From NCBI GenBank assembly GCA_001949185.1, contig BDGG01000002.1, forward strand, positions 8,851,990-8,915,989: 64,000 bases of DNA. Reading direction: 5' to 3'. The notes under the pieces were generated by a model. That model was not told the origin of the DNA, made no database searches, and saw only the letters and a list, made by a program, of their open reading frames with translations. A program made the position numbers and the translations under genes. How positions within the stretch are numbered: position 1 is the first letter of the stretch; every line of letters begins with the position of its first letter. This document shows positions 2,706 to 9,897 of this stretch, in pieces. The stretch comes from Ramazzottius varieornatus. Lineage: Eukaryota > Animalia > Tardigrada.

Positions 2706-3752
2706 TTAGCGACTCAAGATTTTGAAGAGTACGAAAACAAATACCCCGAAGATGAGGACCCAGACACCGGAGTTGTTATCCTGCTCCTGCCGCTGCTGGT
2801 TTCCTGTGCCGTTTCCGCCAGCGAAATCCGATGAGCGCGGAAATCCATCGGTCGAGTCGGCGGAGGCGCGACTGGATCCGAACCAGCCACTCCGACCTAC
2901 AAAACCCTTCATCAGCTTGTGCTTATGTTTAGACTTTATAACAAAGTCAGCTAGCCCATCCGAAATCTGGAAATGCCTTTCTCTACCGCCGACCAGACAA
3001 TTGCTGCATTCCTGTTTTCAACATGCCGTTCGGCGCTCATGATAAGGAACCCTGTCAGACGTGTACGATAAGCGACGCGGTGAACCGGAGCGTTTTGAAA
3101 AGTTGCCGTACGATTTGACGATGGCGAGCCACACGGTACAACCCGAAGGTGCACCATACAGCTTAATCCGCGCATGACGTCACCGTAACCATGTTCTCAA
3201 AGCGGTAACTCAGTAAAACTCCAAAGCATGCAAACGTGACCTAAAGTTTTCTTACTTGTTCCACCTTTGATCGCACTGCTGCGCTCAGCGTCCGGATTCT
3301 TCTCACAACTCTGCTCATGATCTTTGATCTGTTCCACGGACAGCACCTCCCGACATCCGCTGTTCCAGAATTGGCATTTGATGCGCAACCTATCCAGCAC
3401 GATCTGCCGGGCTCTGTTGGGTCGAGTTGGCTTAACAGTCACCTGTGTCAACAAGTTATCTAGTCAACAACAACAACAAGTCAACAAGTCATCCAGATAG
3501 CAGTCACCTGAGTCCGATCCAGCGGACACACTCGTTCTCCCGATACGAATGCTTCTCGTAAACATAGTGTACAGAAGACATGCTGGCATCCTCGAAGCTA
3601 CAAGCAGGCTGGAATAAGTGAATGCGGAGCTGTCCGGATGTAGAGAGAAAACGTACCTCTAAAGGTTTGTCCAATACGTCCAGACATATTGGACAAATAA
3701 CCAGTTCGTGGTCCACAGTATCCGGCACAAAACGTTCGGTATCAATACCCAT
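2706..3752 (-). CDS. RING finger + TRAF-type zinc finger E3 ligase (NRDP1/RNF41/RNF151-like N-terminus), probably with a C-terminal transmembrane tail
   Basis: Exons 3752-3657, 3597-3508 and 3442-3256 give MGIDTERFVPDTVDHELVICPICLDVLDKPLE-LRGCQHVFCTLCLREAFVSGERVCPLDR...LRIKCQFWNSGCREVLSVEQIKDHEQSC. The last ORF (2912-2706) ends VWVLIFGVFVFVLFKILSR*. The exons joining these two parts are uncertain. Confidence 0.75.
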
Positions 3753-4302
3753 CCTATAGCCGAGAATTTAGACCTAACCAGTTGATACACTTCTCCTGCT
3801 TCGACGGAAATCAGAGATCCGAGGGAGATATTCCAATAAAATCTAACTGCCCTTACGGCGTGCCAGAACATACGATAGTTCTGCCAGGCCGCTAGGCGGC
3901 GAGATTTCGGAAATGAAGACGGCAAATTTGATTGGCTTTCGGCAAGCTTAAAATTTCAATGGGAAGACCAGCCCACCCGTACAACGAGCCAGCCCACAGT
4001 GCAGTCGGTTGTACGCACGCACCGGGTGCGTACAGCAGTGTGGACACAACACCCAGTCAAAATTTGTTCGGTTTGGAAAGCCTTGTTCGTACCACAGATT
4101 TGAGGATTTCAAATCAATTAGTTTGCGTTGTATGCATGAGTGCGTTGGACTGCACATGCAGGTGCACGTCGCAGCGCGCTGATTTTATGTCACGTGAGCT
4201 TCCCCAGCTTCCCCACGCACCGTCCCCATTTCCGGCTTCTCTACAGGCCGCTAAGTTAGCTCGCTTCGCTTCTCCCCGTTCGCAATCGCATGCGAAAGGA
4301 TA

Positions 4303-4428
4303 CTGTATACTCTCCCGAATTCACGTACGTCACTCCATTCAGAGTCTAAAAACTAGAGAAAGAGTTCTCATACGGTGACCATAACAGTCTGAATCAGTGA
4401 CTTACGTGAATTTCGGGAGAGCATACAG
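4303..4428. mobile_element. MITE (Tc1/mariner-like, TA target duplication)
   Basis: TA-CTGTATACTCTCCCGAATTCACGTACGTCAC ... GTGACTTACGTGAATTTCGGGAGAGCATACAG-TA: imperfect ~30-bp terminal inverted repeats with no coding capacity. Confidence 0.7.
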
Positions 4429-5093
4429 TAGATTCTACAGTGCTGAAAATGCATCTCTTCAGGGGGTCACGCGACGTAAGTTACCATTGACTAATGTTAT
4501 AAGACCACCTGACTGCCGGAAGGGATGCATTCTCAACAGTGTATACTCTCTAGCAATAGTTTTGTGCTTTAACTTTGTCGGCGTTATGAAGACAAGGCTA
4601 CACTGATGAGATGTTGGCCTTCATGCCAAATCAATCAACATATAGACAAATACAGTCCTACATCCGAGATGCGACAGTTGCTTCTTCCGCGACCGAACAT
4701 CAATTTCGCATGGGACGGCTCGCCAAATGCCGAGCAACACGATCAGCTGATTAACGATTTGTTCGAGCTTGATTTGATCAAGTAATCAAGCATGTGTCCG
4801 CAGCTGATCAGTCTCGGGCGAACAGTGTGGTGGGTAGGCTGGTGAAAATATGAACCGTCGTTTATACCGCTGCCGGTTGTACGTACAGCGTTGAGAGAGT
4901 TGGGTTTCTTCCCAAAGACACCGTGGCTGTATGCCAACGTGTTGCTGGAACATTCGAAAAAGCAGTCGTTGCCGGCGTTAAATTTTCTCTCAGTTGCAAA
5001 GTTTGCCGATGCGCATTCTTGACAGTTCGAATAGGTTCGCCATTTGCGTTCGTCTCTTTCCTTTCAGTTTAAGCTTGCTTCTTCTCTGCAAAG

Positions 5094-8000
5094 ATGTCGT
5101 GGGGACAAGGGGGACAAGGCCAGAGCGGCCCCCAGCTGGGATCCGGCGGTGTCTCTGGATATGCATACGGAATGGGTAGCCAGGGTGGCTATGGATCGCA
5201 AGGAGGATCGTGGCCTTCGCTGGGAAACCAGGGACAATCGCAAGGATACCATGGATATGGACCAGGATCATATGGTCAAAGCGGAAGTAAGCTGGTTGGC
5301 GTAGATTTGCACACTCTTTCACGCCCTCGCATGCGCTCAGCCGTGCGTTCGATGTAGTGCGCGAGTATGTAGGTGCATGACAGAGGGGTCGGTTTTCTCA
5401 GTCACTTGGCTTCTGATGCCTGATGGAGTTTTTCCTGTATTTGCAGATCAGGGTCAGAGCGGATGGGGCAACAGTAATCAGGGTCAGTCAGGTTGGGGAA
5501 GCAGTAGCCAAGGACAGCAAGGATGGGGACAACAAGGAGGATATGGAGAAGGGATGCAGGGAGGATATGGTGGAAGTACTGTAATGCTTCATGAACTTCG
5601 CGAAGCACGTCATCATACACGTACAGTTGAACCCCGGTCCGAAAATTTTGCCCTACCAACCCCCTAAGGGATGTTTCGCGCGTATAGTGACCTTCTTCGC
5701 GAAGTTCATGCAGCATTACAGTAAGTGCTTTAGTGGGCGTTGATGAATGGTTTTAAAAATACTTCTTTCTCCGGTGTTTTATTCATCTTTTGGGACCTTC
5801 CCGCGGTCAGGTGGCCTAATATTCTCCTTATCCTTGCAGACCAAGGCCAGTCTGGACAAAGCGGATGGGGCCAAAGCGGAAATCAAGGTGGCGGAAGTGA
5901 GCAAACCCTTTTCGTACTCCATCGTATTTATAGTTCATCGACTTTCTGGTTTCTTGGTGAACCACTAGTTTTATCTCCAAGAGGAAGTTTCAAAAAGATT
6001 CTGATGTTGGTATTCTTGCCTTTGCAGACCAAGGCCAAGGTGGTTGGGGCCAAGGTAAGTTGGCGAGCTAGTACATGCATATTTTTTGGGAAACTTAATA
6101 GCTATCTTCGAAGCTATTCCCTCTTTCTTCAGTTTTCAATTTTAATGGTAGTTTATTCTTCTAGGTCAACAAGGCCATGGCTGGGGTAGCAATGGTGAAT
6201 GTAAGTTCGAACACCCACTAAGATTTTGAGTACAGATGTCGCTGCGAGGTTAAGTGGCGCACTTCGGCTGGGTTATCCCAGCCGAAAGTGCGCAACAAGA
6301 GGCAATCAAATTTTCCATTGATGACAGTAATTGGACTTGCTTTGACACAAGTGTACGTAGTAGTCTTCTTCTGTTTTCGCAGATCAAAGCGGCGGTTACA
6401 ACAATCAACAAGGCGGTGACGCAAGTAAGCTCGTTTATACTCGAAGTTGTTCTCGGTTTTGTCAAATACATTTTGTCCAGCGGATGCTTCTTCGATGGCG
6501 AATATCGGTTGAACAGAGTGACTTCGGAAAGACAACCTGACAATTTTGTCTTTAGTAGATCGAGGCGGACAAGGTAGACAAGGAGGTTTCGGTGGTGGCG
6601 GTGATCAAGGTGGTCGTAACCGTTCGGGATCGTTCGGTCGAGGTCGACGAGGCTCCTTCGGACAGGGTGGAGGACAACAGGGCGGACAACAAGGAAGACA
6701 GCAGGGAGGTAACCAGCAAGGTGGTGGCGGCGGAATGGGTGGCTGGACCAAGGCCATGATGGACAACCACGCCAACCAGCGGAACCCCAACAACTGGAGA
6801 TGGCACAAGGACCACGGCGACCTGCCTCCACAGTGGCGTCCGGATCACCCCTGGAGAAGTCAGCAAGGAGGGCAGCAGGATGGACAACAAGGAGGTAACC
6901 AGCAGGGAGGTGGAGGTGGCCAGCAGCAAGGAGGCCAAGGAGGTAATCAGGGCGGACGCGGTCGCTCCGGAAGCTTCGGCCGAGGACGACGTGGTAGCTT
7001 CGGCCAAGGAGGTGGTAACCAGCAAGGCGGTGGCGGTGGCGGCCAGCAAAGCGGTGGCGGTGGCGGCCAGCAAGGTGGAAGTAAGTTTAATTGTTCGTTT
7101 CTACGAAATTTTTTACAGACGCTTCGAATAGTGTGTACCGACACGGCTTTGTCAACCGTATTCATTAGAAGGCAAAGTTTAACTTGCGACTTGCGAGCTA
7201 TTATTTACGTTCAACATTGAAAGTGCAGTTTTTTGGGAGATTCGGACTTGTGACTGAGAAGACAGCGTTGCTGTTTTGTGGTAACGATTGATACTTTTCT
7301 GCAGATCAACAAGGAGGAGGAGGAAATCAGCAAGGCGGCGGCCAGGGCCGAGGAGGAAGTAAGTTTAGACAAGAAAATAAAGTCCTCATTGGATTCGATT
7401 ACTGATACGATTCGATTACTGATACTGCAATCTAGCTTTCCCGAAGCAACGACTCGTTTCAAACGAGTCATCTACGGCTAAGAGCTATCAGCACTCGACA
7501 TGAACAAAGAAATGAATGTCTTGCTAGGGATCTAAGGAATCTTTCTTTCCGTTGGTCCTCTTCAGTTTACTCTGTTGAATTAACAGGGTTGAGTTCTACC
7601 TTTAATCTTATTTTGTAGATCAGGGCGGCCAACAGAACGGCGGCCAAGGACAAGGAGGAAGTAAGTTTTACTACGTCTGCCTTTTCTTTTGCTCGTCTTT
7701 AGAGGAATCTCATTTTATTCGATGAGTTGCGTTTCATCAGCAGAACATGCTGTGACTGAGTACTTTTGTAGACCAAGGTGGCCGCGGACGGTCTGGAAGT
7801 TTCGGCCGAGGACGACGTGGAAGCTTCGGTCAAGGAGGTGGTCAGCAGGGTGGTGGTAACCAGCAAGGCGGCGGTCAAGGACAAGGACAAGGTAGGCAAG
7901 GCTCCTGTCATTCTTTCCACAGGAATGAGGCTCACTGGCTGAGCTCTGGTATTCTTTGAAGGTAACAATCAAGGAGGCCAGGGCGGGCAAGGGAACCAGA

Positions 8001-8250
8001 ATTCCGGTGGTGGATTCTGGGGTAGCAGTGTGGGTTACCAGGCTGGTCAGGGACAGGGAGGTAGCCAAGGCGGAAACCAGGGAGGACGAGGTCGATCTGG
8101 TAGTTTCGGCCAAGGAGGAGGATTTCAGGGTGGCGGGGGAAACCAGTCTGGCAACCAAGGTACCAAGAAGCAACTCACCAGATTTCAGTCTCTCAATTAA
8201 GCTTTGCTGAATTTGCAGGTGGCAACCAGGGAGGACGTGGAAACCAGTGA
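5094..8250 (+). CDS. Uncharacterised Gly/Gln-rich, prion-like low-complexity protein (~483 aa, 12 exons)
   Basis: Exons 5094-5286, 5447-5575, 5840-5896, 6028-6054, 6165-6200, 6383-6424, 6559-7080, 7305-7358, 7619-7660, 7772-7891, 7962-8159 and 8219-8250 (1452 nt) are all flanked by AG/GT and join in one open frame from MSWGQGGQGQSG to GNQGGRGNQ*. An in-frame TAA at 5070 supports ATG 5094 as the start. Confidence 0.85.
5579..5721. mobile_element. 143-bp MITE inserted in the 5' splice site of intron 2 of the Gly/Gln-rich gene
   Basis: 27-bp TIRs CTGTAATGCTTCATGAACTTCGCGAAG (5579-5605) and CTTCGCGAAGTTCATGCAGCATTACAG (5695-5721), 1 mismatch; TA on both sides (5577-5578, 5722-5723). Confidence 0.85.
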
Positions 8251-8545
8251 AGGCTTCTTCGAGGTTGCAGGTTGCCAGAGTTTAGTTGAAGAACCAATCT
8301 GACGTGATAGTCTACCAGTGTTCCGCGGTTTTGCCTGGAGCTTTGCCTGGTGTCTCCTTCCTTTTCTAAAGTCTCTAATGGCAGATTATTTTCCCATCTT
8401 TTTTTAACGCGCGCGATATGTCACCTCGTAACTTGACAGTTGTTTATACATTGTTGGATGTTGGAAGAAAGTTAAGTTAAACTGCCGTTATCAGAAGGAA
8501 CGAACGTGCTTTCGCGTAAAACTCTCGGAGTTTGTACGTGTACTA

Positions 8546-8581
8546 TAATAATAATAAGAATAATAATAATAATAATAATAA
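8546..8581. repeat. (AAT)n microsatellite forming the 3' tail of the adjacent LINE
   Basis: taataataataagaataataat...; on the minus strand it follows AATAAA directly (cagaataaaggttgtttattattatt...). Confidence 0.8.
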
Positions 8582-9897
8582 ACAACCTTTATTCTGTTCG
8601 AATGCTAGCCAAGCTTAGCGCTGTATGAACAAAATTGGAAGAAGTGAGGCAAGAGCGCCAGGAGAAGAAGCGACAACAACAGCACAAATTCTTTTTCGTT
8701 TTCTTTTCTAAGAATAGCAAGATTTAAACTAGCAGCACCGCGTCGATATGATTTCTGCACCACTTAGAATTTGAAAAATTCGGAGCGTCAACATAGTACT
8801 TGAAAGTCCCAAAGGTATTCAAATCTACAGCACTAGGGCAGAACAAACAGTCTTTCAGCATGGCTTCGGCGATGTAAGCAAATGAGCCGATGGTGGAATC
8901 AAGAAGGGAACGTGAAGAGGCGGCCACCGAAACTGGACTCAACATCAAGGCTTTGTCTTGGCTACGGGTTCTTAGGTTCTGGCATGGCAGGACAATTCTC
9001 TCAGCTGGTGTTCCTTGGCGAAATCTCCGTTCCAGATCTTCCAGGCATTTACCAGAATCCTCGCACATCGTCGATGTCACAATGGTTTCCACCCTACTTC
9101 TCGGAGGTGCTGATGGTATCGTTTGAAGTCCAGGCCGTAGCTTTGGTCTTCTTTTTCTACTGGGCTAAGACGAATGCTCCGAAGGAACTTCTTTTGAATC
9201 GATTCGAGCTGCTTTTGTAGGCTCTTGGTGGTGGTGAACCAGGAGGAGGGTGCGTAGTCGGCAATCGATCGAACCAAGGATGTGGAGAGAAGTTGTTTCA
9301 CTGCTCCATAGCGCTTAGGAAATAGTCCATTAATACCGTAAAGTCTCTGCCTGCACTTTGCCGTAACTTTGTCCACCTGTGCTGTCCACTCCATCTTGGT
9401 CGAGAACTTGGCACCCAAACATTCAGCTTCGCTCACCAATGGAATCTTTCCCCTGTTGATCGTATAGCTGCCACTTGGCACCCACTTTCTTCATCTTATT
9501 TGATATGCGCAGATGCTGGGACTTTTCAGGATTCAGCTCAAGGCCAGTTTCTCTGCACCAGTCTTCAAGTCTCTGCAGGTCTTGTTGGAGCAAGGTACAA
9601 TCTTCTTTGCTTTTGATATTCCGCCATGGCAGAATGTCATCTGCGTACTGCATCACGGTGCACTAAATTCTTTTTGGCAGGTTGTTCACAGCAATGATGA
9701 ACAGGATCGGGCCAAGAACCGAGCCTTGCGGGACACCAGACGGGACAACGCACTCTGAAGAGAAGTGTCCACCGCCAGTCACTTTCTGACTTCTTCCGCG
9801 CAGGTAGTCGGACAGTAGGTCTTTCAGCCCGCCTTGGACTCCATGGCTGATGAGGCTGGTGACGATGGTAGAGTGCGGAAGTTTGTCGAAGGCTTTA
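8546..9897 (-). mobile_element. 5'-truncated, decayed non-LTR retrotransposon (CR1/L2-like reverse transcriptase)
   Basis: RT motifs KAFDKLPH, SGVPQGSVLGPILF, QYADD and LQQDLQRLEDWC...LNPEKSQ are spread over ORFs 9663-10064, 9423-9656 and 9077-9481, broken by a stop and frameshifts; simple-repeat 3' tail. Confidence 0.9.

Follow-up and report, generated by a model that had tools for sequence, protein, structure and literature searches.

Among the systems closest to the protein described here are the low-complexity regions of the FET family (FUS, EWS and TAF15) and the glycine-rich tails of the hnRNP A-type proteins, in which an uncharged Gly/Ser/Gln region with regularly placed aromatic residues and regions rich in Arg and Gly follow a sticker-and-spacer logic. 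In the FUS family, Tyr residues of the prion-like domains and Arg residues of the RG regions reportedly set the phase behaviour, while Gly is said to keep condensates fluid and Gln and Ser to harden them. A gene encoding a protein of similar layout is located at positions 5094-8250 on the + strand of a 64,000-nucleotide stretch of the tardigrade Ramazzottius varieornatus (GenBank assembly GCA_001949185.1, contig BDGG01000002.1, positions 8,851,990 to 8,915,989), hereafter the window. Its major product has 482 residues. The best explanation of its sequence, which we hold tentatively and at a little less than an even chance, is a multivalent self-associating scaffold that would form a condensate or a gel. 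The single non-repetitive stretch of the protein, the island, is by sequence and profile comparison homologous to a widespread family of tiny proteins with the motif TKAxxDNHANQxNPNN.

Comparison with described systems

The uncharged N-terminal domain rich in [G/S]Y[G/S] that is typical of the FET proteins is also found here, but the RRM and the RanBP2-type zinc finger are absent (Pfam on exons 1, 2, 7, 10 and 11; AlphaFold2 on exon 7). The protein also differs from FET members in that Trp is as common as Tyr, Gly reaches 42%, and its Arg blocks are RxRxxSF repeats instead of RGG boxes. The CAHS, SAHS, LEAM and Dsup proteins belong to the same phylum and are likewise disordered in silico, but they differ from the present protein, which has no amphipathic helical repeats or long predicted helices, no sequence match to them, and a very different composition. 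The absence of LEA- or CAHS-like amphipathic repeats, already proposed in the initial annotation of this stretch, agrees with the AlphaFold2 model of exon 7, where there are just two short helices, and with the lack of CAHS or LEA matches. The same annotation pointed to a likeness to the octarepeat of the prion protein. The GWGQ core is indeed shared, but the His-containing PHGGGWGQ unit, whose His binds copper, and the PrP domain are both absent; there is one HGWG, and the repeat here is a decapeptide.

Gene structure and transcripts

The gene has the following parts, in window coordinates.

4978-5093, + strand: 5′ untranslated region (UTR); the longest RNA contigs begin at 4978-5043
5094-5286, + strand: exon 1, start codon with A at -3; uncharged Gly/Ser/Gln with Tyr and Trp (GYAYG, GYG, SYG)
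5447-5569, + strand: exon 2, major form, with decapeptide repeats of the NQGQSGWGxS type; the minor form extends to 5575
5840-5896, + strand: exon 3, GWGQ; RNA junctions
6028-6054, + strand: exon 4, 27 nt, GGWGQ; RNA junctions
6165-6200, + strand: exon 5, HGWGS; RNA junctions
6383-6424, + strand: exon 6, GGY..; RNA junctions
6556-7080, + strand: exon 7, Arg/Ser/Phe blocks 1 and 2, Gly/Gln spacer and the island
7305-7358, + strand: exon 8, Gly/Gln/Asn spacer; RNA junctions
7619-7660, + strand: exon 9, Gly/Gln/Asn spacer; RNA junctions
7772-7891, + strand: exon 10, contains Arg/Ser/Phe block 3
7962-8159, + strand: exon 11, contains half-block 4 and FWG/GY
8219-8250, + strand: exon 12 with the TGA stop; RNA junctions
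8251-8600, + strand: 3′ UTR; RNA contigs extend to 8411-8500, with an AATAAA signal at 8577

When the exons are assembled from the window, all 11 introns are GT..AG and in phase 1. The initial annotation had proposed this spliced gene, with a product of about 483 residues, from the letters of the DNA; the exons that it implied give an open coding sequence of 1452 nt (483 residues). The gene is real and transcribed: contigs of four RNA runs from four studies were aligned to window positions 3400-9000, and all 11 junctions are present in the spliced contigs of every run. The proposed number of 12 exons and 11 introns also holds, while two splice sites have to be revised. The donor at 5575 is a minor one, exon 2 ending mainly at 5569 (GT at 5570, junction in four runs), and the acceptor of exon 7 proposed at 6559 is replaced by that at 6556. 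Exon 7 starts at 6556 after the first AG of a TAGTAG tandem acceptor (6553-6558), which is used in all four runs; use of the second AG, with a start at 6559, would drop one codon and alter the junction residues. Because the RNA supports donor 5569 and acceptor 6556, the major product has 482 residues, not 483; Gly-Gly-Asn becomes Asp at junction 2 and Asn becomes Ile-Asp at junction 6.

Six of the donors read GGAA/GT and are paired with AG/AYCARGG acceptors, so that an Asn codon is split; three more junctions, CAAG/GT..AG/GT, split a Gly codon. Since the introns are uniformly in phase 1 and the same split codons recur, the gene is made of symmetric modules. No exon-skipping isoform is seen in the four runs, whose contigs lose rare forms. 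Among 20 public runs from seven studies, the share of sampled words of positions 5000-8400 that is present is 0.26-0.52; for most of them it is 0.39-0.52, roughly the exonic fraction. The gene is single-copy in the genome (55,842,812 bases in 200 contigs searched), with no paralogues beyond the gene itself.

Two observations concern the transcripts. An out-of-frame upstream ATG at 5009 opens a frame of 56 codons (5009-5179) into which the main start codon falls. Only the contigs that reach farthest 5′ (from 4978, 4985 and 5004) include this ATG, so that the true start of transcription decides whether the mature mRNA contains it. Runs X2, X3, X5 and X7 of one study (P2), labelled as organisms B-E, contain the gene at the same word share as the runs of organism A, and the contigs of run X2 are at least 99% identical to it. 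Either these are different labels for one species, or Ramazzottius RNA is present in the samples.

Competing donors of intron 2

The 5′ end of intron 2 is occupied by a miniature inverted-repeat transposable element (MITE).

5577-5723, no strand assigned: MITE, 147 nt, with 45-nt inverted ends and TA flanks

The genome contains this element in at least 40 full-length copies, which are 87-94% identical. The copy in intron 2 sits within a former GTAAGT donor, and because of this insertion the intron has three donors in use: 5569, the main one, in four runs, 5575 in two runs and 5720 in one run. Donor 5720 retains the MITE in the mRNA and leads to a premature stop. Loose contig ends at 5575-5577 and 5605-5607 show that the MITE occurs in other transcripts.

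Composition and absence of a fold

Composition and reading frame were computed on the joined exons, and database searches were made exon by exon. Besides Gly, the protein consists mainly of Gln (21%), Ser (8%), Asn (7%) and Arg (5%); in the 483-residue model the last three make up 8.3%, 7.5% and 5.4%. There is no Cys, there are only two Lys in the whole protein, and Ala, Val, Leu, Ile and Met together make up about 3.5%. Exons other than exon 7 are more than 80% Gly/Gln/Ser/Asn, and the protein has 35 spacers of the GGQQ/GGNQ type.

An in-frame TAA at 5070, 24 nt 5′ of the ATG, is part of the transcribed 5′ UTR, and the RNA contigs of the four runs contain no upstream junction. Since this stop codon lies inside the mRNA and no upstream junction is seen, an earlier start of the protein is excluded. 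An upstream exon for a signal peptide, named by the initial annotation as a finding that would count against its proposal, was looked for in these contigs and not found. The N-terminus lacks hydrophobic character, and across the whole protein the Kyte-Doolittle mean over 19 residues reaches at most -0.07. With this low maximum and without a leader exon, the protein has no classical signal peptide or membrane helix.

No Pfam family is found at E<=1 on exons 1, 2, 7, 10 and 11, and NCBIfam has none on the exons. The AlphaFold2 model of exon 7 has a predicted local distance difference test score (pLDDT) of 52 and a predicted template modelling score of 0.17; its two helices, of seven to nine residues, are both in the island. 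The initial annotation had listed the absence of a signal peptide, a transmembrane helix, an RRM and any folded domain, and hydropathy, the TAA at 5070, the domain libraries and AlphaFold2 all agree with it. The 482-residue product is predicted to be non-secreted and fully disordered.

The aromatic N-terminal region

Residues 1-160 contain no Arg or Lys and have a net charge of -4. Their 18 aromatic residues (10 Tyr and 8 Trp) are spaced more evenly than in 99.5% of shuffled sequences, and the protein has nine G[WY]G and four [GS]Y[GS] motifs. A 30-nt repeat unit encodes the decapeptide NQGQSGWGxS, and six of the Trp residues are in GWG motifs, at residues 70, 80, 90, 114, 130 and 139, in an uncharged Gly/Ser/Asn/Gln context. 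The proposed sticker-and-spacer layout, with aromatic residues in the N-terminal part followed by Arg-rich blocks in Gly/Gln spacer, is borne out by these counts and by the spacing test.

The same region invites comparison with GW182/TNRC6 and the other GW/WG Argonaute-hook proteins, which share the repeated GWG, the Gly/Ser/Asn/Gln context and the spacing of about ten residues. Tryptophans that bind Argonaute occur in contexts of this kind, with a required spacing of about ten residues, which suits the six GWG motifs and the decapeptide encoded by the 30-nt repeat. The protein might thus be a platform for Argonaute or PIWI proteins, a small-RNA or germ-granule scaffold, with GWG inserted into the tryptophan pockets of PIWI domains and methylated RG blocks read by Tudor domains. 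However, exons 1 and 2, which carry the GW repeats, have no Pfam match at E<=1 in a library presumed to include Argonaute-hook and GW182 models, the UBA, PAM2 and RRM modules of GW182-type silencing proteins are lacking, and the region has Tyr as often as Trp. We regard such a platform as unlikely.

The Arg/Ser/Phe blocks

The C-terminal two thirds of the protein form a basic region (net charge about +19) of Gly/Gln/Asn spacer with 3.5 copies of an Arg/Ser/Phe block, GGRGRSGSFGRGRRGSFGQGGG.

6606-6689, + strand: Arg/Ser/Phe block 1 (GGRNRSGSFGRGRRGSFGQGGG), exon 7
6948-7031, + strand: Arg/Ser/Phe block 2, exon 7
7774-7857, + strand: Arg/Ser/Phe block 3, exon 10
8054-8137, + strand: half-block 4, exon 11

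The three full blocks, each of 24 residues, are identical at 22-23 of the 24 positions, while their DNA is 67-86% identical; their codons differ by 8-16 synonymous changes and just one or two non-synonymous ones. Because synonymous differences far exceed non-synonymous ones, the block peptide is maintained by selection and is not the result of recent slippage. There are seven RxRxxSF sites, two in each full block and one in the half-block, and 12 RG dipeptides in the protein. The basophilic AGC kinases of the Akt, SGK, RSK and S6K type have as their consensus RxRxxS plus a hydrophobic residue; for PKA it is RRxS plus a hydrophobic residue, which RRGSF fits.

The blocks bear on a comparison with loricrin and the keratin-associated proteins (KAP). 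These are leaderless proteins with similar glycine loops, and here too aromatic residues anchor Gly-rich loops. By this analogy the protein would be an intracellular matrix protein around the cytoskeleton, of the loricrin or high-Gly/Tyr keratin-associated type, perhaps cross-linked by transglutaminase through its Gln residues. The high Gly content, the interspersed aromatic residues and the lack of a signal peptide all fit, and the abundant Gln residues are potential acyl donors. However, with only two Lys and no Cys in the protein, self-cross-linking is impossible, and the selected blocks, which resemble kinase sites, have no counterpart in loricrin or KAP. We therefore consider a matrix protein of this type improbable.

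The island and its family

The initial annotation described one part of the protein as unique.

6735-6863, + strand: island, about 43 residues, the sole non-repetitive stretch; motif core at 6744-6809 followed by a tail rich in Trp, Pro and His

This stretch is not unique, because it is one unit of a motif that recurs in proteins of bacteria, archaea, protists and animals. A HMMER search with exon 7 in a set of 1.84 billion representative proteins gives four hits. All lie in query residues 40-108, which correspond to the island; the Gly/Gln spacer and the Arg blocks of the exon have none. With phmmer, the island matches a protist member of the family at E 1e-7. The motif of the hits is TKA(D/A)LDNHANQMNPNN(WRYWSSRG..PP) and its counterpart in the window is TKAMMDNHANQRNPNNWRWHKDHGDLPP. 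The island has DNHANQRNPNN, which matches the invariant N-H-x-N-Q-x-N-P-N, and its Trp/Pro tail fits the long form of the unit, NPNN..YW.SRG...P..W.

Searching from one of these hits yields 35 unnamed proteins of 45-144 residues, in most of which two units occur at a distance of 30 residues. Their sources are transcriptomes of protists, metagenomes, a bivalve and a cricket, and Pfam recognizes no domain in any of them. In a scan of one genome per bacterial or archaeal species, 225 loci with one to three units per gene were confirmed, among them loci of Bacteroidota, Clostridia, Nitrosopumilaceae, Gammaproteobacteria, Treponema, Helicobacter canis and Dialister. The family pattern is ..TKADLDNH(A/S)NQxNPNNxxY(W)xSRG.., in hydrophilic proteins of 30-140 residues. 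When a profile built from 21 family members is run against the complete 55.8-Mb genome, the island is a hit at E 1.8e-4, and hhalign aligns the island with this profile at E 2e-6 over 22 columns with 55% identity. These matches show the homology of the island to the family.

The profile scores higher at another site in the same genome, positions 2193250-2193414 on the - strand of contig C2. Here a frame of 66 codons (1474-1671 of the extracted locus) has two canonical units and ends in a GGQ-rich tail, GGQGAQGGQGGQQGKK. Two diverged copies are present at C18:94019-94174 and C11:1586926-1587030, one of them with stops. Members of the family carry one to three units with short acidic or Gly-rich ends, whereas the 482-residue protein has one unit amid about 440 low-complexity residues and is encoded by 12 exons. 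The protein can be read as a single family unit within vastly expanded Gly/Gln arms, and descent of its gene from a small family gene may be suggested.

The family is unnamed: Pfam and NCBIfam have no model for it, the PDB has no relative and the searchable literature no mention. Its members occur in eukaryotes and in the genomes of at least 225 species of bacteria and archaea. AlphaFold2 gives no confident structure for the family (pLDDT 51), with one short low-confidence helix per unit. The bacterial gene neighbourhoods are incoherent (MatE, HNH, HTH, ParB-methylase and RNase III), and one phage copy is annotated as hypothetical. Strong conservation in such small proteins points to a common function so far unrecognized.

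No full-length match to a named family, a further finding that the initial annotation had named as counter-evidence, appears in the exon-by-exon HMMER, Pfam and NCBIfam searches. A word-indexed protein search that used the island part of the 224-residue frame around exon 7 has no match, and a control homeobox/OAR exon from the same window likewise has none. Since this control and exact look-ups of two open frames from this genome also returned nothing, the missing tardigrade orthologues carry no information on the lineage-specific nature proposed by the initial annotation. The ESM Atlas search gave no usable match, and the searchable literature, including tardigrade reviews and screens, has nothing on the protein, its motif strings or its block strings.

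The tail of the island, ...WRPDHPW, could be taken for a PY-like signal (R-x3-P-W after a basic patch) by which a nuclear or nucleolar RNA chaperone rich in RG, of the glycine- and arginine-rich (GAR) type, would be imported; the RG blocks would then bind RNA, with no role as a scaffold. The 12 RG dipeptides and the +19 charge of the C-terminal two thirds are in keeping with such a chaperone. RGG triplets, however, are few, the long uncharged aromatic N-terminal domain would be superfluous, and the PY-like signal is a pattern matched by eye, so that we give this proposal little chance.

Proposed function

As a self-associating scaffold, the protein would use its aromatic and arginine residues as stickers, following rules of the FUS type, to assemble into a condensate or gel, and its Gln-rich spacers would favour hardening. 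Phosphorylation of the seven serines in the RxRxxSF sites might neutralize or weaken the Arg stickers and so act as a switch. The island could serve as a short helix on which a conserved partner docks. A more specific proposal is that a docking motif conserved in bacteria, archaea and eukaryotes (HANQxNPNN), whose other occurrences are all in tiny hydrophilic proteins, has been fused to a giant sticker-and-spacer polymer tunable by phosphorylation. In this extremotolerant animal the general role of the small proteins would so become that of a switchable cytoplasmic gel or granule, which would trap the conserved partner of the motif in stress or dormancy; this proposal has a slim chance of being correct.

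Several points weigh against the scaffold. Strict RGG triplets number just two, and Pfam finds no RNA-binding domain on the exons searched. The condensate, gel and desiccation roles are suggested by composition, and the contig depths are unsuitable for ranking expression.

Two further explanations fare worse than those discussed above. The gene could be a transcribed yet functionless runaway expansion of low complexity, as no full-length relatives are detected and modular phase-1 exons could expand by duplication; but the strong synonymous excess between the internal blocks, the retention of a conserved motif unit and the clean splicing in all runs examined make this very improbable. A secreted cuticle, eggshell or adhesive protein, which the composition would suit since it is like that of secreted glycine-rich structural proteins, is close to refuted by the lack of a signal peptide (maximum hydropathy -0.07), the TAA 24 nt before the ATG in the mRNA and the absence of any upstream junction in the four runs.

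If the protein is indeed a self-associating scaffold, it would be a tardigrade scaffold without any folded part, in which two types of sticker are placed in separate halves and the Arg stickers lie within kinase consensus sites. The sticker-and-spacer rules could then be tested on a compact natural example, and an anhydrobiotic animal would have, besides CAHS, another candidate for an organizer of the cytoplasm.

Neighbouring genes

The genes that flank positions 5094-8250 are ordinary animal genes. The upstream neighbour is on the - strand at window positions 3435-3805, where CT..AC junctions at 3435/3501 and 3597/3657 are present in all four runs. Further upstream, at 1621-2241 on the + strand, is an exon with the OAR motif of a paired-type homeobox gene.

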